64,000 nucleotides of DNA from Chrysemys picta bellii (GCF_011386835.1 NC_088797.1:30318001-30382000), one strand, 5' to 3'. Counted from the stretch's first letter, positions 7,687 through 38,116 are shown. Numbers and translations: made by a program. Notes: generated by a model not told the origin, from the letters alone.

Positions 7687-10600
7687 CTAGACCGCCTCAC
7701 CCTTGTGGCGAGTGCGGCTCAGCAGGTCCATAGGCAGGCCGGGGGGCTGGCCGTGGGTGTGGCGGGTACGCAGGCGGCGGAGTTGGCGGGGGCGCTTGGC
7801 CTGCAGCCCCCCTTCAGTGGGCGCCTCGCTCTGGGTGTCGGAGCTCTCATCGATGAAGGCCAGGTTCTCCCCCATGTAGTCTATAGGGCGCAGGCCACCC
7901 CCCGCTGAGGCGGCCATGTTGCGGGCGTTGAGCTGCGCCACCTGCAGGGCGGTGCTGGGAGAGGGGAGCTCCGGGCGAGGCAAGGGAGGTGGTGGAGAAG
8001 GCGTGGCAGGTGGAAGCTCCGGGGGCATAGGGGAGGGTGGGTGTCCCTTCAGCGTCCCCACTTTCTGAAGCTTCTCAGGCAGCCCCATGCCCGTCACCCG
8101 CAGCTGGGCCGTCACATTCCCTGTCCAGCTGGCAGCCTGCGCGGTGAGGCCCCCCATCTGTAGGTTGAGAGGGGAATCAGGGACAGGCAGGGAAATCTCC
8201 CACTGATCCCACCGCATACATCACTGAGCCCCCCCACATCCCTCCACTGATTGCCTCAACATACACCCCAGCCCCCTCAGCCTGCAGGGTGAGACCCCCC
8301 CAACATCTGTGGGGAAAGTGGGGGGTCAGGGAACCCATCCAAGCCCTTCCACTGACCCCCCTCCACTTCCACCCTGACCCCCACATACTTACTCCTCCCC
8401 ACCCCATCCCTTCCCACTGACATGCCCCCTCTCCACATGAACCACTCCTCCCTTCCCCCACCCATCCACTCTGCTGGATTGGGGGGTGTCAGACTGACCC
8501 CCCCATCCACTCTCTCACCTATGGGCACGCCCTGGGGTCTGTGTACAGGATGGGGGGAGGCTCTTTTGGAGGGGGGTGCATGCTAGGGTGTGTGTGCAGG
8601 GTGGGTACATAGCCTTTGTGCACCAGGACAGGACCCGCCAGTGGGTGTATCTTGTGGGGGTGGTGTGGAGCAGTGACAGAGTCCACAGGGGGATGCAGGG
8701 GCGTGGGAGGGGTCAGATGGAGGGGTCGGTTGGGGGGTGGGGAAGACCCATCTCAGCCCATGTGTGCCGGGTCAGCACCCCCAGCAAGTTGTCAATGTGG
8801 GGGATGTGGGGTCCTTTGAGGGGTTGGAAGGGGTGGTGGTTATGAAGGGGTCTGTAGTGGGGTACCAACCCTGGCATGTGTATGCTGGGACAGTACTCGC
8901 AGCTAGTTGGGGGTGCCGTGGGGGGGTCATAGGGATGGGGTGGGGACACCACAGGGGGATGCAAAGTCTGTGGGAGGATGCAAAGGGGTGTGGGAGGGCA
9001 GGGGATAGTGGGAGTCTGTGGGGAGTTGGAGAGGTGGGGTGGGGGACAGTGAGGGGGTTAGAGTGGTGAGGGGGATAGGAGGTCTGTGGGTGACAGGAGG
9101 AGACAGTGGGGAGTCCATGGGGGGATGCAAAGGGGAGGCAGTAAGGGGGATGGAGGGGCAAGACAGTGTGGGGGTTCATACGGGGAGCTGGAGGGGTGGG
9201 GGGCAGGAGGCAGTGGGGGTTCTGTGGGGGGGTTGGAGGGGCAGGATGATGGAAAGTAGGGGGGTTAGAGAAGTGGTGGGCAGAGGAGCACAGCAGAGGA
9301 GAGTCCGTCAGGGGTCCATGAGAGGATGCAAAAGGGGGCAGTGAGTGGGTCAGAGGGGCAGGGTAGTGGGGGTTCCGTGGGAGGGTAAGGGGCAGGATGG
9401 ATGGCAAGGAGGGGATCTGAGGGATGGGGGGAAGTGAGGGGATCAGAGAGGCAGGGTGGGGGAAGTGCGGGGTACCAACCTCGGCCCGCGTGCGACGGGA
9501 CAACACCCGCAGCCAGTTGCCAATCATGGTGAGGATGGAGGCGAAGTAGGCCAGGCCCAGCAGGATCCAGAACCAGACCAGGGGCTTGTACCAGGGGTGC
9601 TTGTCCCCCATACCATCACCTGGGAGGGGAGATGCTGAGACACTGCCCCCGAAACACACAACCTCCTCACTGCACCGGCTGTGCCTTCCCTGCCCCTCTC
9701 CCCCATCACTCCATTGCCCCCAATCCTCCTGCCAGCCCCTCTCCACCCGCTTCCCTCTGCCTCTTCCCTGTCCTCCTTTCCCTGTACCAGGCCCCCCTGG
9801 CCACATAAGAATGGCCAATGGTCCATCTAGACCACTATCTTGTCTTCTGACAGTAGCCCATACCGGAGCTTCAGGGAGAGTATACAGAACTGGGCAATTT
9901 GGAGAGATCCACCTGTCTGCCCCTCCTGGCTTCTGGCAGTTGGAGGGTTAAGATCGCCCTAAGCATGGGGTACATCCATCCCTGACCATCTTAGCCAATA
10001 GCCAGCGATGGACCTATTTTCCATGAACTTATCTAATTTTTTTTTTAACCCAGTTATACTTTTGGCCTTCACAACATCTCATGAGAGGTTGACTGTGCCT
10101 TGTGTGAAGAAGTATTTCCTCTTGTTTGTATTAAACTTGCTCCCCATTAATTTCAATCAGTGACCCCCTGGTTTTTGTATTGTGTGAAAGGGTAAATAAG
10201 ACTTCTCTATTTTTCTACATCAGTCATGATTTTGTAGACCTCTATCATATCCCCCCCCTTGATTGTCTTTTTTCTAAGCTGAACAGTCCTAATATTTTTA
10301 GACTCTCCTCATATGGAAGTTATTCCATACCCTTGATCACCTCTGTTGTCCTTTTCTGAATGTTTTCCAGTTCCACTATATATCCTTTTTGAGATGGGGC
10401 AACCAGAACTGGATACAGGATTCAAGGTGTGGGCACATCATGGATTTATATAGCGGCATTATAATAATTTTCTGTCTTATTTTCTATCCTTCCTACCATT
10501 TTGTTAGCCTTTCTGACCACTGCTGCACATTGAGCTGAAGTTTTCAGACTACCCACAATAACTCCAAGATCTCATTCTTGAGTGGCAACATCTAATTTAG

Positions 10601-13600
10601 ACCTCATCATTTTGTATGTGTAGCTAGGATTATGTTTCCCAGTGTGCATTACTTTGCACTTACCAACGCTGAATTTCATCTCCCATTGTCTTGCCCACTC
10701 ATGCAGTTTCGTGAGATCCCTTTGTAACTCTTCACAGTCTGCTTTAGACTCAACTATCTTAAGTAATTTTTTATCATCTGCAAACTTTGCCATTTCACTG
10801 TTCACTCCCCTTTTCCAGATCATTAGTAAATATGTTGAATCGCACAAGTCCCAGTCCCTCGGGGGACCCCGATATTTACCTCTCTCCATTCTGAAAACTG
10901 ACCATTTATTCCTACCCTTTGTTTCCTATCTTTAAACCAGTTACTGATCCACGAGAGAGCCTTTTTTCTAATCCTATGACTACTTTTTTCTTAAGAGCCT
11001 TTAGTGAGAGACCTTGTCAAAGGCTTTCTGAAAATCCAAGTACACTATATTGACTAGATCACCCTTATCCACATGCTTGTTGACCCCCTCAAAGAATTCT
11101 TGAGTCATGAGCCACAACTTCCCTTTACAAAAGCTGTGTTGACTCTTCTCCCACAAAGTGTGTTTATCAGTGTTAACTGATAATTCCATTTTTTTTTACT
11201 ATAGTTTCTACCAATTTGCCCAACACTGAAGTTAGGCTAACTGGCCTGTAATTGCCAGGATCCCCTCTGGAGCCTTTTTTTAAAAATCGGCATTACATTA
11301 AGCTATCCTCCAGCCATCTGGCACAGAGGCTTGTTTCAGTGATGGATTACGTACTACAGTTAGTAGTTCTGCCATTTCATGTTTGAATTCCTCCAGAACT
11401 CTTGGGTGATTCCAGCTGGTCCTGGTGACTTATTACGGTTTCATTTATCAATGTGTTCTAAAATCTCTTCCACTGACACATCTGTGTAATAGCACTTCAG
11501 ATGTCTCACCCAAAAAGAATAGCTCTGATGGGGGTATCTCCCCCACATCCTCTGGAGTGAAGACTGATGCAAAGAATCCTTTTAGCGTCTCTGCAATGGC
11601 CTTGTCTTCCTTGAGTGCTCCTTTAACACCTTTGTGGTCTGGCCCCACTGCCTGTCTGACATGCTTCCTGCTTGTGATGTACTTAAAAAAAAATGCTTAG
11701 TTTTTGCGTCTTTAGCAAGTTGCTTCTCAAGTTCTTTCTTGGCCTGTCTTATTACACTTGGACCCTTAACCAGCCTGAGTTTGTTGGAACTCATTGGAAT
11801 TTGATTTCCAAAGTTTAAAGGGTACTTTTTTGCTTCTAACAGCCTCCAATATTCTGCTGTTGAGCTATGGTGGTATTCTTTTGGTCCTCGTATTGTCTTT
11901 TCTGATTTGGGGTATACATTCACTATGACCCTGTATTATGGCATTTTTAAATAGTTTCCACTGCTTGCAGGCATTTTACCCTTGTGACAGCTCCTTTTAA
12001 TTTCCATCTAACAAGTGTCCTCATTTTGTGTAGTTCCCCTTTTTAAAGTTAAATTTTACTGTAGTGGGATTTTTTGTGCGTGTATTATCTCCCTACAGAG
12101 ATGCTAAATTTAATTACATTATGGTCCCTATTACTGAGCAGTCCTGCTATAATTAGCTCTTGGACTACATCCTCTGCTCCACTTAGGACATCACACCTCA
12201 CCACCCACCTTCCCTGTCATCTGCTACTCACACCTCCCACAGTGGGACCCACCAGGGGCTCTCTCACACTAACCCTCCCACACACACTAGGCTGCTCCCT
12301 GCTCCCCTTTCCTTGTCCCCCATGAAGCCCAGCTTCCACTGAGCCCCCCCTCCTGCCCACCACCAACAGCCTCCCCCATGTAGATCCTCCCATGCCTACC
12401 TGCCACATAGTCCCCGAAGCCGATGGTAGTCAGCGTGATGACCACAAAGTAGACAGATTCCAGCAGGGTCCAGCCCTCCACTCGCTGGAACACAATGGTG
12501 GGGATGGTGACGAAAAGGATGCAGCCAATGAGGATGAAGAGCAGGGCGGAGAGAACCCGCACAATGGTGGGACTCACCTGCCATTTCTGGGAGGGAGGAG
12601 ACAGCATCAGGGGAGGACCAGGGGAAAGCCCCCTCCCCACAGACTGTGCCAGCCCCCCCCCCACACGCACACTCTGACCCCCGAGAGGGGAACCCCCACC
12701 ACCACCACACACACCAACCCCTTTGCCCCTCACATACACTAATTCCTCCCAACACACACACACTCACTCCTTTGCCCCCCTCACACAGCCCCCTGGCAGT
12801 AGAGGTGCCACCTGGCCGGGTTTTGTACTGCTTTGCCAGGTAGAAGATTTTCTGTGCTGGGTTTTTTCACTTGAGACATGCCAAAGCACTCTACAATCCA
12901 TGCCTTGTAGTTTGGACTGTGGCCCGTGTTAGGATGAGGTAAGAAAAATGATAAAAGACATCCAGGCAGTGTGCAGCGGCAGTCAACAAAGCAAACAGGA
13001 TGTTAGGAATCATTAAAAAAGGGATAGAGACTAAGACAGAGAATATCTTATAAATATAAATCCATGGTACACCCACATCTTGAATACTGCATACAGATGT
13101 GGTCTCCTCATCTCAAAAAAGATATACTGGTATTAGAAAAGGTTTAGAGAAGGGCAACGAAAATTATTAGGGGTTTGGAATGGGTCCCATACGAGGAGAG
13201 ATTAAAGACGCTAGGACTCTTTGTCTTGGAAAAGAGGAGACTAAGGGGGGGATATGATAGAGGTCTATAAAATCATGAGTGGTGCGGAGAAAGTGAATAA
13301 GGAAAAGTTATTTACTTGTTCCCATAATATTAGAACTAGGGGTCACCAAATGAAATTAATGGGCAGCAGGTTTAAAACAAATAAAAGGAAGTTCTTCTTC
13401 ACACAGCGCACAGTCAACCTGTGGAACTCCTTGCCTGAGGAGGTTGTGAAGGCTAGGATTATAACAGGGTTTAAAAGAGAACTAGATAAATTCATGGAGG
13501 TTAAGTCCATTAATGACTATTAGCCAGGATGGGTAAGGAATGGTGTCCCTAGCCTCTGTTTGTCAGAGGGTGGAGATGGATGGCAGGAGAGAGATCACTT

Positions 13601-16240
13601 GATCATTACCTGTTAGGTTCACTCCCTCTGGGGCACCTGGCATTGGCCACTGTCGGTAGGATACTGGGCTGGATGGACCTTTGGTCTGACCCAGTATGGC
13701 CATTCTTATGTTCTTATGTAAAATAACATAAAAATATACAGATTGCGTGGGGGTTGTTTGTCTGTTTTGTAAAACGGTTCTCTAATGCATTCTAGTAATA
13801 CCTATAATGGGCACTAGGACCCTTTTTCTTAACGGGGGGCGTGGCTAGTGGCCGGGCTCTGGTGGTGGTGTGACCAGTGGACCGCATTTTGTTGTTGGTT
13901 GATGGGGTGACAGCCAGGGGCTGTGATTTGTTAGGTGGCAGGGTGGCCAGAGGCTGGGTTTTCTGCACCTTGGAGGTGGCCACCCTACTCAGGAGGGGAA
14001 CTGTGCCACACAACTCTGGGGAAAGGACCCTCCCCCCACCTCCGGGAAGGGAATCCCTGGAACACACGGGGTGGGGGCAGAGAGTGTTGGGGGAGGAAAC
14101 AGACTGGGGAGCCCCCTGGGACAGGAGCCCCAAACCAAGCTGGCCCCATAAATGGGAGAGATCTAGTGCTGGGAAGCAGAGCCAGGCTCCCGGTCCCACT
14201 ATCTGACCCCTCCTCTGCAGCACCCCTGCTCTGCACAGAGCCCGGAGAGTGGGTGCAGGGGTATGTGGGGGGACTGCTGGGGGAGCACAGGAGGCTGGGA
14301 GACCAAGGAGGACAGTGGAAGCCACTGTAGCTGCTGGACATGAGGGGCTGGAGCGGGGGAACCACTGACGACCCTGGAGCTGCTGGGTACATGGGCCCTG
14401 GCTCTGTGGGGACAGGGGGACAGGGACTCAGAGGGCACTCACCAGGAAGATATCCTCCACCTTGCCGATGGCCTGGCGCAGCGAGAAGCCCAAGTGGTCG
14501 CCCACCCCAGCCAGCAGCATCCCGAAGAGCGGGATCCCAACTAGAGCGTAGAAGATGCAGAAGAGACGCCCCCCCTCTGTCTTGGGGGATGTGTTACCGA
14601 ACCCTGGCGGGGGGGAGAGCATGGAGTCAGCAGGGAGGGGGCAGAATTGATGCCCCTTAATCCTGAACTGCAGCTCCCTGCTATCGCAGCCCTGAGCAAC
14701 CCCCCACCTCTGCCCTCAATCCCTACCCGCAGCACACACACATCCCACGGGCCAGTACCGATGGTGGTGATGATGGTGCCAGCGAAGAAGAAGGCGCTGC
14801 CCATGTCCCAGTTGGTGCTGGTGCCATTGGTGCTGTTGGCTGTGGGGTCAGCACCGGCACCCATGGTGTCTCTGACATGCTGGGGGAGACGGGAAGGGGT
14901 TAATACTAGTGGTTTTGGGTTCCCCCCCATCATGCAGCTCCTGCTGTCCCCGCCCCACATCCTTACCCCCGAACTTGACTTTCCCAGTACACATTTGCCA
15001 ACCCTTTCCTGACTGCCCCATGGCTGTTGTCCCCAGACACCTGACTGCCCCCCACCCCACTTTCCCCTTCCTCTCCCCATCTCCCCCTGGAAACCCTCCA
15101 TCAGCCTCACCCCACCCCATTACCCCCCAAATCACCCCAACCTGCATCTCCTTCTGCCCCACCCCAATGACACCTGACCCCCCCCCACCCTTCCCATGCC
15201 TCCAGCACTGTCCTTCCCCATCTACCCCTTATAACCATCCCCTCCTGCCCCCCCATTGACAACTCTGATTTCGGCCAATCTCAGGAGTCCAGCCTGGCCC
15301 AAGGGTGGGGGTGAAAAGCCCCTGTGATTGGCTGCCCTTCTCCCACTTTCTCCACCTCCTGGGAAGGACAGCCAATCAGGGATGCTGCAGGAGGCAGGTG
15401 ATGCTCTCCCCCCCCACAAGAGATATCAGCTAGAGAAGTGGGAGTGGGGGGAGAGAAGGAGCAGGGGACAGGAGGGAAGTGGGGAGGAAAGGAGAAAGAG
15501 CCCAGCAGCTTAGGGCAGCCCTGCTCCCCCCTCCAGCCCTGCCCCTCCCAGACTGGGGGAGGGTGACAAGCCCCATGGAGCTGCAAGAGGAGGGGGGCAG
15601 ATGTAGGAGGCCAGGGAGGGGATTAATTTCTGGACTGGGGGGGGGACAGAATTAATTCATTAGGATTTTAGGAAAAGCTGGAGGCTCTGCACGATCCCTG
15701 AGTCAGCGAGAGCCTCTTTCTCTTTAGGAACTGGCAGCGCTGTAACTGAGGGGACTTTCAGTGGTGGCCATAGCACTTCCCATCACCCCCACCAATGCCT
15801 GCTCCCCCCTCCCCCATGCCCCACTGCTGCTCCCCTCTTTCCCCCATCCACCACACCCCGTCCCCATTCACGCCTCACACCTGCCCCCTCCATGCCCCTC
15901 TCCCATCATCTCACCAGGATGAGTGTGTCCAGCTCCTGGCTGGGCACGCAGCGGTATCTCTGCAGAAACTGCTCACGGGCGACCTGCAGTGCCTCCTGCT
16001 GGCGGCTCTCATGCGGCTGCTCCAGCAGGCGGAAGACGAAGGCGCCGCTCACCAGGTAGACCAGCACCACGGTCAGCAGGGCCAGCACCGTAGCCCGTCG
16101 CATCACGCTGCCCTGCCCACTACGGGGTGTCTGCCCCACCCCCGCCCCACTCAGGATTGACTCCTTAGACGAGTAGCAGACAGGCAGTGCCCCATGGTTC
16201 TCGGCAGGGTGGGGGGCTGTGGAGGTCAGGGGGGAGCTCA
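7687..16240 (-). CDS. KCNK4: Two-pore-domain K+ channel TRAAK (K2P4.1)
   Basis: Phase-consistent exons 16240-15915, 14879-14759, 14603-14443, 12586-12400, 9619-9480, 8157-7687. Pore signatures TTIGFG (split across two exons) and TTIGFGDY; C-terminal [15 protein letters not shown] is KCNK4-specific. The ATG matching the human start (MRRATVL) is at 16103 (422 aa); 468 aa if read from the exon-2 acceptor. Confidence 0.97.
8560..9440. repeat. G/A-rich degenerate tandem repeat in the last KCNK4 intron
   Basis: Recurrent GGGGGATGCAAA/GGGTCTGTGGG motifs; explains the Pro/His-rich tail of ORF 8772-9818. Confidence 0.65.
9804..12230 (-). mobile_element. CR1 LINE, 5'-truncated, decayed ORF2 (RT domain)
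   Basis: ORF fragments [22 protein letters not shown] and [14 protein letters not shown]; 3' end GGCCATTCTTATG at 9804-9816; AT-rich island. Confidence 0.95.
12930..13718 (+). mobile_element. CR1 LINE 3' fragment
   Basis: ORF 13254-13523 (MIEVYKIM...RTRGHQMKL...[11 protein letters not shown]); ends in the ATTCTTATGTTCTTATGT tail. Confidence 0.95.
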
Positions 16241-18988: not shown

Positions 18989-19019
<31 letters not shown>

Positions 19020-20676: not shown

Positions 20677-21109
20677 GGGGCCGGGGGAGACAGAGTTACA
20701 TATAAACCCAGAGCTGGGGCGGGGGAGGGGGGAAGACTCCCTGTGCTGCACCCCCTCTCTCTGAGGAATTTCTGCTGAGCCGCTCTCGGGGGTGGGGGGA
20801 TGACTCAACATAGCAGCTCCTCCAAACTTTGGGTGGGTGGACACAACCCGCCCTTTGATTCCCTGAGCCATGAAGAGAGGGCTTAACTCCCTTCAAGCTG
20901 TGTGTGTGTCGCTGGGGAGCTCCAGGCAATATCAGGGATCTTTGTAGCCGGAGGGGACACATTTCTGCCATCCAGGCTGGAAAGAGAATGGAAAAGAATG
21001 TGAAACACAGAAATCATCATCTTGCTGCCCCAATGCAAAGATGCAGCTGCCTCTGGGGTGGAGCTCAGGGATGCATATAGGGGTTGCTCACCCAGCAGTG
21101 TAGATGCTC

Positions 21110-24100
21110 TCAGACGCTGGTGCCCATAGCAGGTTCAGCGGGATCCTCCTCCGGCTCAGCTTTGGGTGCCAGCTGGGCCAAGGGGGTGCTGCCCAGGAGC
21201 CCCCTCCGAAGGACATAGGGGCAGGAGGGGCCGGAGGGGATGTCGGCAAAACCTGTGAGTGGGGCACAGAGTGAGATTGGGGTTAACGTGTGGGGGCTGA
21301 GCTCTGCTAGGGGTGAGCCCCCATCCCAGACACCTTTGGGTCCCAATCTCTCACTCCCTGGGGGCTGGGAGCACTGCTAGGGGTCCCCCCTCCACTCTCA
21401 CTCCAGTGCCCTGCTGGGGGGAAGGGCAGCTGCCTGGGGAGGGATCAGAGCCAGAATCAGTACTGCACCCCTGCCCCGCCTTGCAGAGCTCAGAGCTGCT
21501 GAGCCAGATGGAAAATCAACTGGGCGGAGGTGGGAGGGGGGGAGAATTCCTAGCTGAGCCTGGGCACAGGGCCACTGGCTGCAGGTGGCGGGGGGTGTAC
21601 TGGACTCTCATGGAGGCACAATCTGGGATGCCTCCCCCTACTCCCCTCACACTAACCCTCCCAAATTGGGGCTTCCCCTGCCCTGTACCCCTCTGCTCTG
21701 TATCTCCCCCAGAATCCCCTCCACTTCATACCCTCCTCAGTCTGCCACTCCCCTGCCCCATACCTCCTCCCTGAACCCCTCTGCTCCATAACCTGCCCCA
21801 GGCTGCCCCTCAAATGCTGCCCATCCCATAACTCCCTGAACTGCCCCCCACACCTCAGCACCCCCAGACATGGGCAGTGCCTGCACCATGTGCCTGATCC
21901 AGCTGCCCACCACGCACCTTTCATGACGACCTCAGGCAGCCCATAGGGCTCATACTGAGTGTGGTCGAAGGCCGCCGAGATGAGCTCCCTGTGGCGCCTG
22001 CCCCGCGCCGGCCCCTCCGTCTGGGTCTGGGCATCCCGCACCACCGGCCAGGCAGTCTGGAGAACTGAGAAAGAGAGACGGGGACATAAGTTAGGGGTCT
22101 GCTACCATGACGCTCCAATGCCTGGGCCTCCAGCCATGACCCCCCTTTCTCCAATGACCCTCCCCAAATACCCGGGACTCTCTCCCCACATGATTCCCAT
22201 AACTGCCCAGACCCCTCCCCCCGACCAGCAGGCAGGTGCCACCCCTCCTCCCGAAAGGCAGTGCACCCCATTGATGCCCAGCCCCCTTCCCTTGCAGAGT
22301 CAAGGGCAAAAGCCCTGATCTCACCCCCTCCCCAATTGAGCCAAAGCTCCATGTCCCCCCCTCTTACCATAAGCAAGGTCTCCCTGGCCTCTATCCCCTA
22401 GGGGCGCTGGACGGGGGGTGGCTGAGGTCCCCTGGTGTTGTCCGTCTCCAGTGGCAGGTGTGGTACATTCCTCTCGAGCGTGGGATTGCCACAGTGCCAG
22501 CTCAGCCCGCAGGGCCCGGTTCTCCTGCAACAGACGGGACAGCACCTCCTCCAGCTGGGAAGAGACGGGGGTGCGGAAAGAGAAAGGAGACAGATCCTGT
22601 TACCCCAATGAGAGCAGGGTTCAGCCCCCAAGAACCCCAACCTGACCCTGGGGCAAAGGGGTGAGGGGGGCGCCACCGAGACCAGTTTGGTCCAAGATGG
22701 AGGACACTGATGACAGATGGCTCATGGGGAAGGTGGAGGGGGTGGGGTGGGCTGTGGCATATAAAGAGTAAGGGTGTTTTGGAAGGCGGGGGGGATAGCT
22801 ACGTGGGGGTGTGTGGGAACCCAAGTTTTGGGGGAATGGGGCAGGGGAACCCTGGGTTTGGCAGGGGAGCCCCCAGTCAGGCATTGGAGCCCTGGGACAC
22901 GAGTTGGGAGGTATGGGCAAGGAAGCCCCGGGTCAGGCAGGTCAGTCGAGGGTGCATGGGGTGGAGGGAATTGGGGAAACTGCCCTCCCCCAAGCTCACT
23001 CACCTGCTCCTGCAATCCAGCCTGGCCTGCCGGCTTCTGTAGCTCCCACAGGATATTCTGCAGCGGTGCCTGCTCACTGTGCCAGGCCTGCTTCCCCGCC
23101 GGCTCCCACATCCTGCTAACCACAGCCAACTCCAGGGGAATGGGCAGCTCCACAGGAGTGGGGGAGGCCAAACTTGGGGGGCCAGACTCTGGGGCTATGG
23201 GAGGCAGCTCAGAGGGGGTGGTGGTGAGTGCCTCTGGGACTGTGGGAGGTGGCTCAGTGGGGCTGGGCTCTGGGACTGTGGAGGGCGGCTCAGGGGGAGC
23301 GGGCTCTGGGACTGTGGGGGGCGGCTCAGCGGGCGGCTCTGGGACTGTGGGGGGCGGCTCAGCAAGGCTGGGCTCTGGGACTGTGGGGGGTGGCTCAGCG
23401 GGGCCGGGCTCTGGGACTGTGGGGGGCGGCTCAGCGGAGGGCTCTGGGACTGTGGGGGGCGGCTCAGCAAGGCTGGGCTCTGGGACTGTGGGGGGCGGCT
23501 CAGCGGAGGGCTCTGGGACTGTGGGGGGTGGCTCAGCGGGGCCGGGCTCTGGGACTGTGGGGGGCGGCTCAGCGGGGGGCTCTGGGACTGTGGGGGGCGG
23601 CTCAGCAGAGCCGGGCTCTGGGACTGTGGGGGGTGGCTCAGGCAGGCCGGGCTCTGGGACTGTGGGGGGCGGCTCAGCGGGGCCGGGCTCTGGGACTGTG
23701 GGGGGTGGCTCAGCGGGGCCGGGCTCTGGGACTGTGCGGGGAGGCTCAGGGGGACCGGTGGAAGGCGTCTCCCCACCCAGCAGCACCAGCAGCCGCCCCA
23801 CCTCAGCCTCCAGCAGCTCGCGGACCCGTCCCGCCTCCCGCAGCGCCTGGCCCAGGCGCTCCAGCTCTTGCTCCCGCTCATGCCCCTCGGTCAGCAGCTC
23901 TGCCACATGCTGGCTCTGGGCCTCACAGGCTAGTGCCAGCCGCTCCGTCTGCAACCCCAGCATCTCCTGGAGCCGCCGCAGCCGCTCCTGGGCCTGGGCC
24001 GCCTGGGCCTCTGCCTCAGCCTTGCCCAGGGCCAGGGCCTTCAACTTCCCCCGCAGCACCTGCAGCTCCCCCACCTCCTGAGCATCCCCCCCAGGCAGGC

Positions 24101-27100
24101 CGGGCCCTGGTGCCCCCCAGACCTGAGCCTCCAACTCCACAGCCAGAGCCTGCAGTTCCCCCTGCTCCCCTTTGGCCAGGCCGGGCCCCAGCGCTCCCCG
24201 CAGCTCCTGGGTCTCCTCCTTGTGCTGCATGGCAGCATCATGGGCCAGCGGCATCTCAGCCAGTGCCCGGTGCTCCCCGGTCAGGTCTCGGGTGCCTGGA
24301 CGCAGCTGCCAGCAGGTTTCCAGCAGCCCCTTGTGCAGGCTCTCAGAAGCAGCCAGGCGCCGGCGCAGCCCCAAAACCTCAGCCCTCAGGGCCTGCAGCT
24401 CTGTGGGGGGCTCCGGCTCCCGGCCCCGCTCCCCACCGGGCACCAGCCTGCCCACAGCTCGGGGATCCTGTGCTGAGGAACCTGGGGGGAAGGCAAACAG
24501 AGCAGAGAGGGAGCAGTTAGGGGGACATGGTGCCAGGGGGCACCCCTGGGCCCATGTTAGGCTGCCGCAGGGTAGAGAGAGACCCCCCCAGACCTCCCCA
24601 TGGTCCCTGAGACACACACCCAGCCCCCCTTCGTAACCCCCATACCCACAGACACCACCCCTCCTACCCCCATACACCTACTCCCCTGCAGGTCCCCCAC
24701 CCCCACCACAGCCCCGGGCTGGACCCCCAAACCCACAGGGCCAAACACCCAGCCTTGTCCACTGCCCCCCTTTCAGCATCCCCTCCTCCCCCCACCTCTG
24801 ATACCCGCTTCCTCCGGGCCCTGTCTTCCCCTCCCCGGCCTCACCCTGACCCCACTCCCTCATCTCACCTCTGACCTTCCCAGCTGCCCCTCGTTTCTCG
24901 GGTGCCCGCTCCAGCCGGGAGCTGCTGAGGCTGCGCCGGCCACAGCCTGGGGGGCGCCGCTGCTGCTCTGATCCCCCCAGGCCCTGCTGAAGATAGGTGT
25001 GTGAGTGACGTGGGCTCTGACAGGGCAGGGGCCTGGCTGGCTCAGAGGGGTGGGAAATGGGATATGAGGCACTGGCTCCATTTGCTGATTAAACAGTCCC
25101 TTCTGCCCCTTGGCACCGACACCTCTCTCACCTTGTTTGGTGGGCGGTGGGGGGGCTCAGGGATGTCCAACCGGGTAACCTGCTGCTCCAGCGCTTCCCG
25201 ATGGTGCCGCTCCAGCTTCGCCAGCTCCTGCAACAGACAGGGGGTGATATGCAACATGACAACTGCCGGAGCCCCAAGTGCGGGGTGGAGGGGATCCAAG
25301 GGGTCTCCCTGTGGTGAGTGGGGGGCTCAGCCTGGTGGGACCCCAGCCCTAGCTGAGTGCAACACAGTCCTTTCGGGTCCCCTTGTAAGGCTGTTCTGGC
25401 CTGAGAAGCACTTGGCCAGCCACAGCAGTGTGGGGCTGTTGCACACAGGGGGGATTAGTGCAGTGGGGTCAGGGGCTGAAGGGAGGGGAGGAAAGTGGCA
25501 GGGTACTATTGGGAAGGTGGGGCTGTGCTGGGTGTGGGGGAGGGACTGTGAGGTGGGGATGAGGCGCCTGGGGGAGGGGGCTGTGCCAAGTTGGGGGGAT
25601 TGTGCCGTAGAAGGGAGTAGCAGGGTGTGGGCTGTGCAGCACGGGTTCTCCCACCTGCCGGTGCTCCCTCTCCTGCTGCTCCAGGCGGCGCTGCGTGGCC
25701 CCTGCTCTCTGCCTCTGGCCCCTCAGCTCCTCCAACAGCTGCTGCACCCGCCGTTCCAGGGCACTCACCTGGGGGGGCAACAATGTGTCAGACTTGGGCA
25801 AGCCCTCCAGTGGCTCCATGGAGAACCAACAGACACCCCAAGGGCTACATCCCTCACCTAGCCCCTCCAGAGGTGCCAGTTCTGTGTATCCTGCTTGTTC
25901 ACCACAGCTGGGGAGGGGAGGATGGGATCTGCAACAGGAATATGAGTGGGGGGGATAAAGATAAAGGGGGGTGCAATCCCTCCCCCTCCCCTCTGGGGCT
26001 GCCTCATAGCACCAGGGCCAATCAGAGGGGGGGGGCTAGGAGAGCCTCAAGCTCAAAGGGGGCCTCAAATTTAGACACTTGTTAATTTTTTGGCATTTGA
26101 TAAATTTCACAACTTGTTTTTATGCGCATCCCTATCGGACCGAAATGTGACAGACTCTCTCAGCTTAGAGCTGCAGATTTAAGCAAATACGAGATGTGAT
26201 CTGGTAAAAGACATCATTTTTTTGTTAACTGATATAGATTTTGTCATATTAAAGAGTTAAAAATGTTCATAAATATTAATAAAAATGTATCGGTTCTGAT
26301 GGGACAAGATTAGACCACGTGTCATAATTTTTGATGTTTATTATGGCTAGGGGCCTCTCTGGACCTCTGAGAGGGCCCAAATAGCGCCACTGCATTCTCT
26401 GCTCTAGGCCTCCCCCCTCTGATCCCTGCAGCCCCTGTGCTCCAAGGACTAGAGCCCCACCTCGTGGCAGCAGTCAGTACTGCACCCTGCAGCAGCTCCA
26501 TGCCCCCCACCGTGTGGCAGCAGGCGGTACTGCACCCTGCAGCAGTTCCATGAGCCTCCAAGTGGCCCTTCCCACCCAGTATGAGGCTAACCCATTTTCC
26601 CTCTGGTCTCTCCCATGCTCACCTTAGTGACTGCCTGGTCCCGCTGCTCTGTGCACTGGGCCAACTCCTGCTGCACTGACTGCAGTTCCCCCCTCAACTC
26701 CCAGGCCTCCATGTCAGGGGGGCCTTGCCCCGGCCCTGCAGGGGAGAGGATAGGGGTGAGAAACGGCAATGCTGCCCTCAATGGCCTGGGGCCATTACCC
26801 TCCTGCTCTCCTCCACCATCATGAGCCATATGGGCTTCCACCACTGGCACCAAGGACGGGCTGGGCCCATAGTCCTTGAGTCTAGTTCCTCACACCCCTC
26901 CACCCCTGCACCCCTTGGCTCATCCCCAGGGCCAGCTCTAGGCACCAGCATTCCAAGCAGGTGCTTGGGGCGGCACTTCTCAAGGGGCAGCATTCTGGCC
27001 CTTTGGGGGCGGTTCTTTTCAAGGGGCGGCACTCTGGGTTTTTTTTATTTTATTTTTTTGCTTGGGGCGGCAAAAAACCTGGAGCCGGCCCAGCTCATCC

Positions 27101-29664
27101 CCCTCCCCAGCCACCACTGGACACCAGCCCCAGTTCTCTCCTGTGCAGACCCCCCCCAAACCGGACACCAGCCCCAGTGTAACCAAGTTACCCAGAATGC
27201 TTCACTCCCAGGAACTGGAGATCAGCCTGGATCTCAGGGGTGAGAACAGGGGGGTTCCCTCTAATGCCCCTCCCCTGGCCCAGTCCTTCCCAGGACCCAT
27301 CCAGATCCCCACTATAGGAAGGGCAGGGCAGGGTCAGGTTGGGGGGCTGGGTGACCTGCTCACAAGGAGAAACTGCCATAGCTAGGTTGGGCGTGAAGAG
27401 GTTAACTTCCCACCCACACACACACAGTCTCTCCCAACATCATTGGAGTTTTACCTGCATTCTCCTCTCTAGGTTCCTCCCCAGGGGATGGGATCCCCTG
27501 ACTGTTCTCTGGGGGGGCAGGGCCCCCAGGAGGGACACTGTGCCAGGCAGCCCCTCGATGCACGAGCGGCTCCTCCCCCAATGTGGAGCTGCTGGGCTGC
27601 AACTGGAGAAGGGGAGATAAGGGGGTGAGGGATACAGGCCTTTACTAAATGCACCCCAGTTGTATGGGGCAGGGGCTTCAGCTCAGGAGTGAGGGGCACA
27701 AGCAGATAGAGGCAGGGCCACCCAGAGGATTCAGGGGACCTGGGGTCTTCAGCAGCGGGAGGCCCCTGCCGCTGAATTGCCGCCGAAGACCCGGCATTTC
27801 AGCGGCGGGTCCCGGGGCGGAAGGATCCCCTGCCGCAGAGGTCTTCAGGGCACTTCAGCAGCGGGTCCCGGAGCGGAAGGACCCCCCGCCGCCAAACTGC
27901 CGCCGAAGACCCAGAGCGGAAGAAGCTCCGGGGGTCCGGGCGCCACGAGAGTTTTCCGGGGCCCCCGGAGCGAGTGAAGGACCCCGCTCCAGGGGCCCCG
28001 AAAAACTCTTGTGGGGGCCCCTGCGGGGCCTGGGGAAAATTGTCCCACTTGCCCCCCCCTCTGGGCGGCCCTGGATAGAGGTGGGAGAACCAAGGCCTGG
28101 GATACCAGGGGGCTGCAGGTTGGGATTGAGGGACACTGGCAGAGCTGGAGGTGGGGGAACTTGGGGTGGGATGGTGGGGGTTGGAGGTCGGGGTTGAGGG
28201 TCACCCTCTGTACTCACTCTCATGCTGGGTGTTCGGGGTCTGTTCTCTAGTCTGGGATTTTGCTCCCAGGTGCTCAGCTCAACTCCTGCGAGGAGACAGA
28301 CCTGGTCAGCTCTGCAGGGCCGATGACCAGCTCCCCAAGGGGTCAGACTGTCCCCCCCCCACCCCCTCCTCAACAGTCTGCAACAAGCTCTAATCCCCCA
28401 TCAGCCTGGGACAGGAATGAGCCCCCCTCCCTCCTGCCCTCCTCACCTTCATCCTGGGGGGCCCAGCAATGGAGCAGGGGGGTGCTTGACCGCAGGTTAT
28501 CCAGCTCTGCCTGGCACCTGGGGGGACCCCAGAGAGAGATTAGTGCTGCTTGCCAGGTGCCCCCTCATACCCATCCCCAGTGCCCCCCATCCCCATAGCT
28601 CCCCCAGTGCCCCTCACCCCAACACTGCTCCACTCAGCCCCATCCCCCACCCCGCACAGTGTTCCCCCCACCCCAACACCACAAATCACTCCCTTCGGTG
28701 CCCCTCATCATCCTCTGGGCACCCCCCCACACTCTTACTCTGCCCCCTGATCCTGCCACCACTATCCCAACAATGTACCTCCCAGATTCCCTCACCTTTC
28801 CCCAGGCACCACCCCCAGATCACACCATCCCTACCCCAACAATATCCCCTACTGCACTCTCACATCCCCTCACCTTCCCTTGGGCACCCCCCAATCCTGA
28901 CCTCCAGATACCCCTGGGCACTTCCTCCACCTGCTCCTGGGCAGCACCCCACTTAGTGCTGTTCCCCCTCCTGTCTCAGGCAGTGCCTCTGACACCCCCC
29001 CTTGTCCCACTGGCATCCCCATCCCCCGGCCAGTACCTCCGCAGCTCCTCCTCCAGCTCCTCAATGCGCTGGGTGGCCCGGCCCAGCTGCCCCTCCAGCT
29101 GGCTCAGTTGCGCCCCCTTTGCCTGGAGCTCCCGGCTCAGTTGCTGGCGCCCGCACTCCAGCCGCTCGCAGGCCTCGGCCAGGTCCCGCCGCTCCCGGGC
29201 CAGCAGCGCCCACGTGCCACGCTCCTCCTTGTGCTACAAGGGATGGAGTGTGAGCGTGCAAGGCCGGGGGGAGAAGCCCAAGAGTGCACAGCCCAGAGGT
29301 GGGGGCATATGGTGGGCATGGAGACACGAACTCTGCTCTGGCCCAGGGCTGGGAGAACTGGCTGGTTCAGGAGCATGGGGCATGGGCAATGGGCCTTGCA
29401 GCATGGCCACTGACTCAGCCATAACGGTGCTTGGCCTGCTGGGAGCCACGGGCTGCCCTCCCTGGGTGCCACCCCCCATCAGTGTGGGGGGCACCCATGT
29501 ACCTTCTGCCTCTGCTTGTGTAGCACGGCCTCCAGTGTGTCCAGCTGTGCCTGCTTCTGGACCCGCTCCTTGTTGGCCCACTCCAGGCGCTGCTCCAGCT
29601 CCCTCACCCCCTGCAGTGCCCGTGCCGGCAGCCCCTCCTGCCAAGCCTCGCCTGGCCAGCTCAT
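21110..29664 (-). CDS. Centromere protein F-like coiled-coil protein (short CENP-F paralogue, ~1013 aa)
   Basis: Thirteen GT-AG exons with consistent phase: 29664-29503, 29233-29037, 28517-28447, 28285-28218, 27602-27455, 26735-26623, 25768-25655, 25227-25132, 24986-24869, 24481-23004, 22554-22368, 22064-21918, 21252-21110 (3042 nt). The N-terminus MSWPGEAWQEGLPARALQGVRELEQRL resembles CENP-F MSWALEEWKEGLPTRALQKIQELEGQL. The C-terminal YEPYGLPEVVMKGFADIPSGPSCPYVLRR resembles CENP-F FEPEGLPEVVKKGFADIPTGKTSPYILRR. Confidence 0.88.
23229..23752 (-). repeat. Coding minisatellite, 15 units of 36/33 bp encoding (A/P)EPPPTVPEP(G)P
   Basis: GGGACTGTGGGGGGCGGCTCAGCGGGGCCGGGCTCT units; eleven 12-aa-type and four 11-aa units, all frame-preserving. 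Confidence 0.95.
26927..27093. mobile_element. hAT-type MITE (CAGGGCCGGCTC family)
   Basis: Slightly mutated TIRs; perfect 8-bp TSD CTCATCCC (26919-26926, 27094-27101). Confidence 0.85.
27713..28073. mobile_element. hAT-type MITE, second family
   Basis: TIRs CAGGGCC(A/G)CCCAGAGG; perfect 8-bp TSD GATAGAGG (27705-27712, 28074-28081). Confidence 0.88.
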
Positions 29665-32425: not shown

Positions 32426-35400
32426 CTAGGTCTGCGGGGTGGAGTAGAGGCTGTGGTGGTGGCTGGCCTGCACAGTGACCTGGGAGAAGAGCAGGGGAGT
32501 TGTGGGGGGCTGCCCCCCCAGCCAGTCCGGATCCCTCCCAGTCCGGCCAATGGCTCCATACCAGCTGCCGCTGCCCAGTCGGCCTGCCAGGCTGCAAGGC
32601 AGAGGGGGGGGGGGGTTACATGGAGTACCATCCTTCCATCCCACTCCCCAGAATAGGGTCCCCCCCATCTGCCCCACCCCTCCCCAAGCAGAGCCCCAGC
32701 AGGCATGAATCCAGAGGGGTTAGCTCCCAGCATGCAGTGCTCCAACGCTCCATTAGTGAGACCCCATTGGGGGTCAGTTCTCCTCCAGGGACCTTAAACC
32801 CAATGGAGGGAGAAGGACCCTGTGGACTCCCTCCCCACCCATTTATTCTCCCCCCAGGGGGTGTTACCTGCTGCTTCCCCTGGGGAGGGGCTCGCTCTGG
32901 TACTGCCCGGGGGACTAGAGGTCAAGGGGGGGGGTTACCTGCTTCCCTTCCTGCGGGAGGGCCCCTCGTTCTCGTATTGCCCGGGGTGGTCGAAGAAGTA
33001 AGACCGGGAGCCCCCGAGCTGCCCATTGATGATGTGGTTGGCACTCTGCCAGGGGGCGGAGGAGAGAAGAGACAGGCTATTATTGTAGAGGGAGGCCAGG
33101 TTTCTCTTCACCGCCCCCTCCCCCCTTCCCCAGGTGATTGCGACCCACCAGGCTGACCCACAGGAGAAGGGCTGTTCTGTGAGTGTGTGTGTGTGTGTGT
33201 GTGTGTAGATCCCCCCTGCCAGGCTGAGGCCTGCAACACCTTGTGGGGGTCCCCCCCTCTGCTGTAAGACTCCTGCCCCATAGAGGAAGCCATATTGCGC
33301 CAGCCCAGCTGTGCCATGAGGAGGGGGTTGGGGAATCCCTCATTGCTGGGAGGTACTCTGTGGGGGGGCCCTTCCTGACCCCAGGAGCTGCTAACTGACA
33401 TCTCAGCAGGCCACGCCCCTCCTCCCCGGCCTGGCATAACAAGTGGGCCTGCAAACCCACCCTGACTGCGAGAAGGGAGCGCAAGCTCAGAACACGTCAC
33501 AAGAGCCGGGGCCAGCAAACGCTGACAGGAAAGGAGCAAACGGAGCTGGATGCTGACGGATTTAACGCAAGGGCTGCTAATCAAGAGACGTGTCAGCCCA
33601 GAAATCAAGGGACCAAAATGGGTGTGTTGGAAATTAGGCCTAACTGGTGGACAAAATACTGAGGGGCTGGGCTTTCCTGCCCCTCACCCCCCTTCTGGGG
33701 CCCTTCAAAGAAAAGACTTTGGGGACAGGAAAAACAGGCTAATAACACCCAGGGATTGAGACAGGAGACCAGAAAAAGAGGCTGGCTGCTCCCCCATCTC
33801 CTGGGACCTCTGGATCCAGCATGATATCATTGGGCCTCTGTCATCCTGACCCTAGGAGATGCTCTTATCAGACCAGGCAAAGATGGACCCAGATGACACC
33901 TCCACCAGCTTTATTAAATACAAACACCACCTGGGAGACAGACTGTCACCCCATCCCATGCGTCCTTTTCCTCCCCCTGTTCCTCCATTATTTCTTCTCT
34001 TTCCCCTCCCTCTCCTTATGCCTCTTGTCTAATGAGCGGCTGGCTTAGCAGGCCCACACTGCAAATTTTGCAACACTGCCGTACACCTACGACCAAAGAG
34101 GCAGCTCAAAGCAGTGGCCTGAGGAGCCCGGAGCGGCTGGGGGGGTCCCTGTGCCCAGCCTGTGTTTCTCCAGCAGGGAGGCTGCAGGTGAAAGTCGGCT
34201 CCACAGAGGCCACGTTTCTCACTTGGCCGGGAGTTTTAATGTCCTATTGCGTGTTTGTCTTGTTTTGTTTTCTAGGGACCAGGGTGGGACCTTAGCAACG
34301 ACACCAGCCCAACCCTTCTGAACTAACTTCTGCTCCCCATCACGGGACAGTTATTACACCTTTACTGGCACCTCAGAGGCTGCCAGACGGGTTTTGCCCT
34401 TCCAGAAACTCCCCCCCGAGGGGAACTGGCACAAGGGCTGGGGTTACAAGTCTGCCTTTTCACATTTGAAACACTTTCACTGATTCGCCTCCTTTAGCTG
34501 TATCTGGTACCAAAGGTTCAGAGGGTGTTTAATGGGGTGGCTGCCATGGGGCTGAGCAGACCAAGGTCCCTGTACTCAAAATCCCAATTAAACCTTGGTT
34601 AGATCTGGATAGTGCCAGGGTCACGCAAACATCTTTGATTCTCTGCATCCAGTTATTCCTCCACAATTAACCCCGCAGGCCCTGCTCCACTCCCCCAATC
34701 CTGGGCTCCAGCTGCCCCACTCACCAGGTCCTGGGGAGGGCGGTGCACCCGGAAGAAGCCCACCAGTAGGGCAGTTGGCAGCAACTCCCACACAAAGAGG
34801 ATGAGGCCAAAGACCAAGTATCCTTGGTCCCCCAGGTCAGTGATCAGATCTGCCTGGAGGGGTGGGGGGAGACCGTTCAGATTCCTTTGGGGGTCTGGCC
34901 ACCAGCCCCAGGTGCCCGCTAAATTTTCACCAGCCAAAACGAGGCTCTGCCGAAGGGCTGAGGTGCTGCCCCCCCAAGAACAGAGAGCAAACAGTGGGGG
35001 AGAGATTGTGCCCAACTCCCCCAAACAGAGAGTTAGAGACACCAGTCCCCATGGAGGGGCAGCCCCCCGAGTCACCTAACCTCCCCGAACCACACCCACC
35101 CCTCCACCACATCCTGGAGCATCCCCCCAACTACCCTCCACATGCACCATACCCCCCCAGCCTTCTGGAGCCACTCACTCCCCCAGCCCCGCCATCTCCA
35201 CCCACAACACCTTGCAGGCCCCCTTGCCTCTCCATCGGTGCCAGCCCCCTCCCTGGAAGTCCCCCACTGTCTGCACTGACCTGGTCCGAAACATTGTACC
35301 AGTCGTAGTCGAAGGAGTCCAGCCGGGTGTGGGAGCTCAACGCCAGGGCCACCAGGTTGTAGCAGGCACGGCTGGCGTGCAGCAGCACCATGGTGCCACC

Positions 35401-38116
35401 CATGGCTGCTGTCTGGCACACTGTGGTGCCCTGGGGAGGGAGGGAGACAGATGCAGGCACCATTCCTGCGACTCAACCTCCCGAACCCATTCCCAAAGGA
35501 TTCCCATCAGGCCCGTGGGCCCTCCCAAACCCACCCAGGTAGCATGGTCTCTGGCCAGTGCCAGATGGCACCTCCTAGAGGGAAGCTCCATGTCCCATTC
35601 CCCCCAACCCTCCGTCCAGCCAGTCCCCCACAGGCTGGGGTCAGATCGGAGCCAGCACCCCCTAGGGGTGAAGGGCCCAGTATCCCATTCCTAACCCTCC
35701 TGAGCCAGCCAGTGCCCCGGCTCTGGGACTGGATTGGAACCAGCACCCCCTAGAGGAAAAGGATGTGTCCCACCTTGGCCTGCAGGTAGAGGCTGGTGCT
35801 TGGTGAGCCGCGAGCCACGAGGCAGAGGCAGAGCGCCAGGGTGATAGCACCCAGCACGAAGAGTGAGTCATTGATGAGGACACGGGTCAGCACCACGGCC
35901 CAGGGCTCGGCCCGCCCCAGCCGCACCACGAAAGCACAGGCCACGTTCACTGCCAGGAAGAGCAGGCTGGCGCCCAGGCAGGCCCCCCGCACGGCCAGCC
36001 TGTGGGAGAAACTGAGACTGAGGGACCAGCCTGGAGACATACTGTTCCCCTCCTGCCCTGGGGGGCAGATCTACTCTGCCAGTCCCTTCCACTCCCCGCC
36101 CCCAGCTCTGCTGCCCCGTCCTTACCCGATCTCTCTGCAGAGCATTCCCTCCCCTCCAGATCCTTCTTCCCGACTCAGTGCAGCTCTCCTACTACGTTCC
36201 CTGCCCCTCCCACTCTCCCCAGATCCCCTCCCCACCACAGTCTCCCATCCTTGCCCCTCCCCCATCTCTCCAGCTTCCCCCTCCTTCCCCCCAGCTCAAT
36301 CCCTAAGCAGCTTTGCTGCTGGGCTCAGAGGATGCTGGGGGGGCAGGGGGGGAAGGTGCCCACACAGGGAGCCAGTCCAATCCCACTCCTCCCACCAGCC
36401 TTTGTTCCAGCCCTGCCCAGGGAAGGGGGGTGGGCACAGAGCCTCTATGCCCATTAGGCCAAAGCCACCAGCACCAGGGAATGTGGGGCACAGAGCCAGG
36501 CTGGGGGTGAGATGGCCCCAATTCAGCTGAGTGACTTCTGGATTTTATCCCTGGGTCTGGAAGGGGAGTGGGGTGTAGTGGGTTCCAGTGGGGCGAGGAG
36601 GTGTCAGGACTCCTGAGTTCTATTCCCAGCTTGGGGCATGGAGGGGCTATAAGTGGGTATGGGGTAGGGGGGAGTGTGGGGGGGATACTCACAGCCCTTT
36701 GGTCATGTTCGGGTGGTACTTAGCTTTAGCCTTGAACACCACCTAAGGAAGGGGGGCAGAGTTAGGGTCACAGCCTAACGGGCACCCCTCCACCAGCACA
36801 TGCCCCTTGCAGCGTGACTGAGGAGGCAGAGTCCAAGGGAGATGAGTTGCAAAACATCAACAAACAGAACGTGCCCCCCCGCCCCCAACAAGCCAGACCC
36901 AACCACAGTCAGAGCGCACCAGAGCCAGCAGGGAATGCAGCAAAAATTGGGGGCACAGCAGTAACAGGTGCAACCCCCCATGTGCAGCCCCTCCCCCGCA
37001 AAGGGAGAGAGGCTGGGTCTCTGGGGCTTGGTCATCCCTCACAAGACTCACCACTAAGGGCAGGATTTCATTAGAGGGGAAAGGTCCCATATCTCATTCC
37101 CTACACCTCTCACCAAGCCAGTCCCCCCTGCCCCGCCCCACCCCACCCTGTCCAGGGACAGACTGGTGCAAGCGCCCCCTAGAAGGGAAAGACCATGTTT
37201 CCCATTCCTCAACCCCATAGCCAGATAGTCCCCTCCCTCCATTCCACTGCTCCTCCCCCGCACCCTAAATGCTTCCCCAACTGATTTTCTGTCCCACGTT
37301 GGAGTCCTCTCCATGGGGCAGGGACAAGGCACTCAGCATCACAGGATGCTACTTTCTGGAGTCTGGACACGCCTATGACCCCATCACTGGGGTATCTGGG
37401 CACCTCCACAAATATTTATGCAAGCAGCATATGAAGGGAGTGGGGATTAGTGGGTTAGAGAGCAGGTAGGGGGCTACTGGGTTCTGTCCTCAGCTCTGAG
37501 AGGGGAATTGGGTCTAGTGGGCTAGAGCTGGGAGTCAGGACTCCTGGGTTCTGTCCCCAGCTTTGGAAGATGAGTGGGGCTTTAGTGGTTAGAGAAAGAG
37601 TTGGGAGCCAGGACTCCTGAGTTCCCTCCCCAGCTATGGGAAGCGCCAAGCAAGGAAAAGTGAAGCCAGGTGTGCGGAAACCCAAGTTGATGGCTTTTAC
37701 TCACAGGGCTGAGCCGTGAAGCCCCCCTCACCCCACCCCACCCTGATTACCTGGGCAAAGTAGAGGTTCATGAGCGTCAAGGTGAAGAACTGGAGGCAGA
37801 CGGGGCAGCAGTAGAGCAGCCAGTAGAGGAAGGGCCCCAGCTGGTTGGCCTTGAGAGTGTTCTTGAAGTAGAAGGAGAAGAGTGTGGTGCGGAGGGTGGC
37901 CCAGAGCAGGCAAAGGAAGAGGAAGACGGTCTGATAGCTGAACTTCTTGTGCCGGTAGAGCAGCACCAGCCACAGCTGGGCATAGACTGAGAGGAAGAGC
38001 AGGGCATACAGCGCCGTGTACAGCGCTGTGAGCCCCAGCTTGACCGCCGGGGGAAAAGCTGGCGTCAGGCGCTGGGCTGGCACAATCACCGTCAGGTTGC
38101 TGGCAGCTTGCTCCAT
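32426..38116 (-). CDS. GPR137: Integral membrane protein GPR137 (397 aa)
   Basis: Exons 38116-37751, 36742-36693, 35999-35774, 35430-35281, 34853-34725, 33045-32939, 32591-32426; phase-consistent. Motifs [17 protein letters not shown] and C-terminal [11 protein letters not shown] match GPR137. Confidence 0.96.

Follow-up and report, generated by a model that had tools for sequence, protein, structure and literature searches.

A CENPF-like gene beside KCNK4 in Chrysemys picta bellii probably represents an old second CENP-F lineage

The stretch of Chrysemys picta bellii DNA analysed here (GCF_011386835.1 NC_088797.1:30318001-30382000; 64,000 nucleotides, hereafter the window, with positions counted from its first letter) has a G+C content of about 60%, contains no runs of N, and carries a gene resembling CENPF between the genes for GPR137 and for the two-pore-domain potassium (K2P) channel KCNK4. 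An order of GPR137, CENPF-like gene, KCNK4 and CATSPERZ, all on one strand, had been proposed in the original prediction. The first three genes do follow one another in that order, on the minus strand, whereas CATSPERZ could not be confirmed: the interval 7687-38116 extends from the KCNK4 stop codon to the GPR137 start, so that CATSPERZ does not lie within it, and the open reading frames (ORFs) found at 220-3514 are without any Pfam match that would confirm their identity. We consider it probable that the CENPF-like gene is a member of a second, old CENP-F lineage, termed class B below to distinguish it from canonical CENPF (class A), and that this lineage arose through a block duplication preceding the gnathostomes, probably a whole-genome duplication.

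Spliced mapping resolves the gene into 13 exons which together reproduce exactly a protein of 1012 residues (P0001) annotated in Chrysemys picta bellii as 'uncharacterized protein LOC122173687 isoform X2'; the total exon length is 3039 nt, or 1013 codons with the stop counted, and all 12 introns are bounded by GT..AG. The longest open frame (22725-24677, minus strand; 651 aa) is 100% identical to P0001 and contains exon 10. Membership of the CENP-F family is evident at both ends of the protein. Over the whole of P0001 the Pfam family CENP-F_N (PF10481) scores 123 bits against a cut-off of 37.7, although only positions 1-131 of the 304-position profile are covered, and exons 1 and 2 exceed this cut-off singly. 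CENP-F_C_Rb_bdg (PF10490) scores 69 bits (cut-off 21) over a domain that is split across exons 12 and 13 and that overlaps the Miro-binding peptide considered below. No further credible family emerged from the full-protein Pfam scan. Exons 3-5 provide a proline-rich, little conserved linker in place of the second half of CENP-F_N, while the tandem repeat of exon 10 encodes a 12-residue proline-rich unit of the PPTVPEPGPAEP type, the copy number of which varies among turtles and is lower in Trachemys (P0002).

Table 1. Features of the window, with exons listed in the order of transcription.
Feature	Position	Strand	Description
GPR137	32429..38116	-	ATG at 38116; final coding exon ~32429-32719; from ORFs and cross-species exon matches
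CENPF-like (class B) gene, NCBI LOC122173687	29664..21110	-	13 exons, 1012 aa; ATG 29664, stop 21110
Exon 1	29503..29664	-	Codons 1-54, phase 0 end after ...KQRQK; CENP-F_N positions 1-56, E = 6.1e-17
Exon 2	29037..29233	-	Coiled-coil part of CENP-F_N, positions 57-121, E = 1e-13
Exons 3-5	28517-28447, 28285-28218, 27602-27455	-	Spliced mapping of P0001
Exons 6-9	26735-26623, 25768-25655, 25227-25132, 24983-24869	-	Short coiled-coil exons; joined by spliced contigs
Exon 10	23004..24481	-	1478 nt; long coiled coil, then proline-rich repeat region
Tandem repeat in exon 10	23232..23758	-	36 nt x 15 copies, 87% matches (Tandem Repeats Finder)
Exon 11	22368..22554	-	Spliced mapping and contigs
Exon 12	21918..22064	-	First half of C-terminal domain, ends ...YEPYGLPEVVMKG; CENP-F_C_Rb_bdg positions 3-22, E = 2.6e-5
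Exon 13	21110..21252	-	Starts FADIPSGPSCPYVLRRG, ends GTSV and stop; CENP-F_C_Rb_bdg positions 22-42, E = 1.9e-9
KCNK4 (TRAAK)	7690..16106 (approx.)	-	Downstream neighbour, 5 kb past the CENPF-like stop codon
Aldo-keto reductase ORF	42301-43341	-	Intronless, 346 residues; Pfam Aldo_ket_red, E = 5.9e-48
Na/Ca exchanger exon	50830-52791	+	653 residues; Na_Ca_ex, Calx-beta, Na_Ca_ex_C

The turtle class-B gene is an expressed member of the CENP-F family. Contigs from four public runs of a single study (X1-X4, whose label as RNA is a guess) were aligned to 21100-27000, a range that includes exons 6-13, and they skip seven intervals whose CT..AC borders on the plus strand are GT..AG on the minus strand. 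Exons 6-13 are thereby joined as in the model, with exon 10 linked to both exon 9 and exon 11. Within the introns, at 26025-26420 and 26813-27000, contigs also pile up with many mismatches, loose ends and two small non-canonical joints; this pile-up is probably a dispersed repeat transcribed elsewhere.

Homologue searches gave different pictures according to the region used as query. With the central coiled coil, a word search retrieved turtles only (17 proteins); this region evolves too fast to reveal the age of the gene. The N-terminal 125 residues added lizard proteins of 730-930 residues and 64-70% identity, from Podarcis, Elgaria, Lerista, Anolis, Sceloporus, Hemicordylus and Varanus, and a word search with a caecilian N-terminus returned two caecilians only. 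An exhaustive HMMER search with residues 1-125 of P0001 against 1.84 billion representatives produced 181 matches, the long ones of which sort into two classes by their C-terminal motif. Class A, which is canonical CENPF, comprises proteins of 2.3-3.8 thousand residues with the motif GFADIP.G..SP[YF][IV][LI]RR (typically GK.SPYILRR), and most of its full-length members, together with the crinoid outgroup, end in C-x-[VI]-Q. Class B presents the motif GFADIPSGP[SA]CPYVLRRG and lacks the CxVQ end. The turtle gene bears the extended class-B signature ...YEPYGLP[ED]VV.KGFADIP.G..CP[YH][VI]LRR and has no CAAX motif.

Species were assigned to class B by looking up the members of the HMMER clusters. 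Besides the reptiles, they include salamanders (the newt Lissotriton and the axolotl Ambystoma), caecilians (Rhinatrema and Microcaecilia), the sturgeon Acipenser, the bichir Erpetoichthys, five teleosts (Cyprinus, Scleropages, Umbra, Aldrovandia and Trichomycterus) and, with a slightly altered motif (CPH[VI]LRR), the ray Hemitrygon and the sawshark Pristiophorus. The labels found in class A include catshark, coelacanth, gar, caecilian, frog, axolotl, bird and mammals. Both classes occur together in the axolotl (P0069 and P0048), and in caecilians and elasmobranchs both are present at group level, in different species. Among annotated proteins no class-B member was found from a mammal, bird or crocodilian, and we infer from these sequences that the gene was lost in mammals.

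A maximum-likelihood (ML) tree was computed with IQ-TREE under LG+C20+F+G4 from an alignment that combined the N-terminus (at most 330 residues) with a segment of about 97 residues surrounding the C-terminal motif (53 sequences, 432 columns kept), with a crinoid as root and with spiders excluded as very long branches. Class A forms a clade (97/98) from which the turtle gene is excluded and to which a lamprey fragment is the weak sister (93/55). The chondrichthyan short forms group with class B (96/71), and the osteichthyan class-B clade (100/99) divides into ray-finned fishes (99/96) and tetrapods (100/96); within the latter, amphibians are sister to a reptile clade of turtles and lizards (100/100) which is subtended by a branch of length 0.78. 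Both paralogue clades mirror the species tree. In approximately unbiased (AU) tests the placement of the reptile genes with the amniote CENPF clade was rejected (delta lnL 101, p = 3.8e-69), as was that of the chondrichthyan short forms with class A (p = 0.007; this group was picked after seeing the tree). Since the two paralogues each repeat the species tree, and given the outcome of the AU tests, the sequences place the duplication that separates class A from class B before the crown group of jawed vertebrates. The gene had been predicted to be very old and to persist in fish, amphibians and other reptiles. Its age is borne out by a separate class-B clade that reaches the cartilaginous fishes, and its persistence by orthologues in lizards, salamanders, caecilians, sturgeon, bichir, teleosts and cartilaginous fishes; it is neither confined to turtles nor, by the AU test, a branch that left CENPF after the amniote radiation.

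The genomic surroundings of the class-B genes extend this relationship from a single gene to a block. In four species (Chrysemys, Carettochelys, carp and Umbra) the gene that directly follows class B, in the same orientation, is KCNK4. In Carettochelys (L005) GPR137, class B and a K2P gene succeed one another on a single strand, with flanking exons 91-96% identical to GPR137 and KCNK4 of the window, and in Elgaria (L001) GPR137 is again directly upstream of class B. The carp locus (L003) presents STX5, an RD3-like gene on the opposite strand, class B and a K2P gene on the class-B strand, the first exon of which matches KCNK4 at 48.8 bits versus 30.9 for KCNK2. In Umbra (L006) the K2P gene begins 9.5 kb past class B on the same strand and is closest to KCNK4 (54.1/49.7 versus 44.8 bits). 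No K2P exon was found within 10 kb downstream of class B in Elgaria and Scleropages, and no neighbours within 10 kb of the reedfish and stingray genes or of gar CENPF. Three intron positions, namely after codon 54, after about residue 120 and inside the C-terminal motif between ...KG and FADIP, are common to gar CENPF (L004) and to class B of turtle, lizard, arowana and carp, and this sharing indicates a duplication of genomic DNA and not a retrocopy.

In the human genome CENPF and KCNK2 are neighbours that share one orientation, and 1q41-43, 14q22-32 and 11q13 are classic paralogous regions that hold ESRRG/B/A, KCNK2/10/4, GPR137B/C/137, MARK1/3/2 and ACTN2/1/3. In two of these families the members of the first two regions, KCNK2-KCNK10 and ESRRG-ESRRB, form the closer pair and the 11q13 member is more distant from both, for which reason the split between class A and class B would fall at the older of the two rounds of duplication. 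A human genome-wide association study (GWAS) table gives KCNK2, KCTD3 and CENPF as the genes closest to a single 1q41 variant (PMC8263739), and a copy-number study describes BAD, KCNK4, GPR137, ESRRA and CCDC88B within one 96-kb segment of human 11q13.1 (PMC3547038). The proposal that CENPF-KCNK2 and class B-KCNK4 are sister blocks from the early vertebrate duplications is thus supported, as regards the blocks, by the KCNK4 adjacency in four species, the three shared introns and the 1q41 listing; as regards the mechanism, we infer whole-genome duplication, which is the best supported and is not proven.

The history that we favour starts from an ancestral block in which a CENP-F gene was followed by a K2P gene of the TREK/TRAAK type. 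This block would have been copied at the DNA level before the last common ancestor of jawed vertebrates, most likely in one of the two early vertebrate whole-genome duplications, with one copy giving rise to CENPF-KCNK2 (human 1q41) and the other to class B-KCNK4 (the human 11q13.1 region). Class B would then have been retained in cartilaginous and ray-finned fishes, salamanders, caecilians, lizards and turtles, and in the reptile stem it would have undergone fast evolution and a shrinkage from about 1.4-2.2 to about 0.75-1.0 thousand residues.

Several points weigh against this history. The gene tree and the microsynteny of four species fit an old segmental block duplication equally well, the adjacency of CENPF and KCNK2 is taken from the human GWAS table and from general knowledge, and the wider paralogy of 1q41/14q/11q13 (ESRRG/B/A, GPR137B/C/-, MARK1/3/2) is taken from general knowledge. 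In the tree, a lamprey lineage outside the whole duplication is not rejected by the AU test (p = 0.22) and its link with class A is weak, the clade of class B and chondrichthyans has a value of 71% in the Shimodaira-Hasegawa-like approximate likelihood ratio test (SH-aLRT) with its AU group named post hoc, and the reptile branch is long and deviant in composition. The lower bound on the age depends on one crinoid root in a tree without amphioxus, tunicate or hagfish. The overall ratio of nonsynonymous to synonymous substitution rates (dN/dS), given below, is high for a conserved adaptor. As to distribution, the absence of class B from mammals, birds and crocodilians concerns annotated proteins, and the GC-rich region is often missing in bird assemblies, while no class-B protein is labelled for gar, coelacanth or frogs.

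Among the alternatives, the one that survives best is an old, small-scale segmental duplication which carried the CENP-F and K2P block to another chromosome before the radiation of jawed vertebrates, although we regard it as unlikely. Such a copy would equally yield a split preceding the gnathostomes, K2P neighbours of the same subfamily and shared introns; moreover, the CENP-F lineages number two, not three or four, and a lamprey lineage outside the duplication is not rejected. A private segmental copy would, however, need to have landed exactly in a paralogous region, whereas the regions 1q41-43, 14q22-32, 11q13 and 19q13, as they are generally known, contain families with one member in each (ESRR, TREK/TRAAK, GPR137, MARK, ACTN and LTBP), which is the pattern that whole-genome duplication followed by loss predicts.

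That the reptile gene could be a decaying remnant of class B, transcribed but without protein function, we judge to be very unlikely. Reptile class B has lost more than half of its length along with the second half of CENP-F_N, its annotated models disagree in both length and name, and between Chrysemys and Carettochelys dN/dS amounts to 0.47 over 708 codons and to 0.79 in the proline-rich repeat. Against such decay, the frame is open and both ends are kept in at least 15 turtle and 8 lizard species, the 17-residue C-terminal motif is identical in turtles and lizards and thus invariant across the split between them, and dN/dS falls to 0.29 in the last 96 codons and to 0.23 in their core. All 12 introns are canonical and 7 of the 12 are spliced in contigs. 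The open frame, the splicing and the constrained ends together lead us to reject a pseudogene.

A recent transposed or truncated duplicate of CENPF within reptiles or amniotes has next to no probability: the short turtle and lizard proteins (0.75-1.0 thousand residues), their long branch and the restriction of central-region matches to turtles would suit it, but it is rejected by the ML tree and the AU test, by the occurrence of the same C-terminal signature in teleosts, sturgeon, bichir, amphibians and cartilaginous fishes, and by the KCNK4 neighbour in teleosts, while a retrocopy of CENPF is ruled out by introns at CENPF positions.

Compared with CENPF (mitosin, LEK1; human 1q41), the turtle gene shares the CENP-F_N coiled coil (the first 125 residues are about 50% identical), a C-terminal domain of 40 residues with G-F-A-D-I ... 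[IV]-L-R, the three intron positions and a TREK/TRAAK-type K2P gene as the next gene. Unlike CENPF, it has one-third of the length, lacks CENP-F_leu_zip and the CxVQ end, covers CENP-F_N only at positions 1-131 of 304 and carries a lineage-specific proline repeat; its motif reads GPSCPYVLRRG instead of GK.SPYILRRT and its neighbour is KCNK4 instead of KCNK2. The CENPF-like genes of fishes and amphibians (Cyprinus, Rhinatrema, Erpetoichthys and Acipenser) are its orthologues, falling in the same clade with the same C-terminal signature and Pfam architecture, and those of carp and Umbra have the KCNK4 neighbour as in the turtle. They differ from it in their length of 1.4-2.2 thousand residues (3.8 thousand in one case) and, for the most part, in a fuller or complete CENP-F_N: all 304 positions of this profile are kept in class B of ray, bichir and axolotl, as opposed to the first 131 only in the reptile forms.

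What class B might do is suggested mainly by its C-terminus. Miro binding by human CENPF requires residues 2977-3020, and these also suffice for it; F2989 inserts into the ELM1 pocket, the glycine that precedes it is vital, D2991 pairs with R263, and ILR at 3001-3003 pairs with GTPase1 (PMC10897228; PMC4538849). Sequence comparison indicates that the turtle K-G-F-A-D-I-P-S-G-P-S-C-P-Y-V-L-R-R retains every Miro-binding determinant of human CENPF, and the invariant G-F-A-D-I ... V-L-R would accordingly be expected to bind Miro GTPases on mitochondria, as it does in CENPF. Other Miro clients, namely MTFR1/2, Trak and MYO19, rely on a short motif whose Phe or Leu inserts into the ELM1 pocket and is followed by a strand pairing with GTPase1 (PMC10897228); these proteins resemble the turtle protein, a predicted Miro binder, in their FADI-type motif and are otherwise unrelated to it.

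The turtle protein lacks the CxVQ farnesylation end and finishes in GTSV. CENP-F_leu_zip (PF10473), which is present in gar CENPF, was not found at E <= 0.001 in the class-B proteins P0001, P0021, P0048, P0065, P0076 and P0062. Without the leucine-zipper repeats and the farnesylation end, class B is probably not a kinetochore protein. In tetrapods the class-B proteins terminate in -S/T-x-V, in the forms GTSV, GTGV, GSSV and SSGV (window 21110-21130; P0020-P0027, P0041, P0048 and P0055), which looks like a putative class I PDZ ligand, and the fish proteins have acidic tails instead. The class-B protein may be an adaptor built as a coiled-coil dimer, which Miro would recruit and which would have no task at kinetochores; for this role we would claim a little less than an even chance. 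Slightly more tentative is a broader view in which ancestral jawed vertebrates would have possessed two CENP-F genes, with class B serving as a dedicated non-kinetochore Miro-binding adaptor that connects mitochondria with microtubules or, in tetrapods, with PDZ scaffolds, and in which the reptile form would be a minimal version composed of the N-terminal coiled coil and the Miro peptide.

CENPF is usually regarded as single-copy in vertebrates, and a second lineage, of jawed-vertebrate age or older, is now traced from rays to turtles. Its address beside KCNK4 is stable, and it represents an early duplicate that has survived in many lineages for over 400 million years and was not found in mammals. 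The names given to class-B models in databases are 'centromere protein F-like', 'rootletin-like', 'PAN1-like' and 'uncharacterized', and the carp class-B proteins appear in UniProt as si:dkeyp-115e12.6. A literature search found no paper describing a second vertebrate CENP-F lineage, none usable on KCNK/ESRR paralogy and no functional paper on fish or amphibian class B; the sole mention of si:dkeyp-115e12.6 is in a zebrafish G2/M marker list (PMC12891946). A separate zebrafish gene is named cenpf (PMC4345935). Some caution is warranted in that fish genes labelled 'cenpf', or taken as CENPF orthologues, may be class B. The lineage would also constitute a natural separation-of-function variant, which retains the N-terminal coiled coil and the Miro peptide but not the kinetochore-related middle or the farnesylation end, and it could in this way help to explain the purpose of the CENPF-Miro link; mice without this link are reported to be healthy (PMC10897228).

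Of the two neighbours, the upstream gene is presumably GPR137 and not GPR137B or GPR137C, a name that we take from the human protein. Matches to its last and middle exons lie immediately upstream of the class-B orthologue in Carettochelys (96% identity) and in Elgaria (67%), and at both of these loci the gene called upstream of the orthologue bears the Pfam domain GPR137_N; the GPR137 ORFs of the window itself are matched by no Pfam model. For the downstream gene, Ion_trans_2 is found on three exons, and comparison with PDB structures favours KCNK4 for exon 1 (66 bits, with 55.6 for KCNK10 and 49 for KCNK2) and for the M4 exon (40.9 versus 34 bits), whereas KCNK2, KCNK10 and KCNK4 were not separable by this comparison for the exon at 12290-12763. 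The KCNK4 exons of the window share 91-92% identity with the K2P gene downstream of the Carettochelys orthologue.

Three further genes were noted around these loci. An RD3-family gene stands just upstream of class B, on the opposite strand, in carp (L003:3078-4123) and arowana (L002:2107-3474), and no RD3-like sequence was found in the turtle window; human RD3 (1q32) and RD3L (14q32) lie within the same set of paralogous regions. The Na/Ca exchanger (NCX) exon of the window may belong to NCX4 (slc8a4), which would make it a second gene of the block that is missing in mammals and a member of the paralogy with 14q (SLC8A3); this candidate identity is put forward because human 11q13 has, to our knowledge, no SLC8A gene. 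Between GPR137 and the NCX gene lies the intronless ORF with an Aldo_ket_red match, for which the best solved structures are bacterial YvgN (228 bits), the Bacillus 'morphine dehydrogenase' and trypanosomatid prostaglandin F synthases, with just 158-180 bits for the vertebrate AKR1 enzymes; judged by its sequence, this ORF is a bacterial-type aldo-keto reductase.

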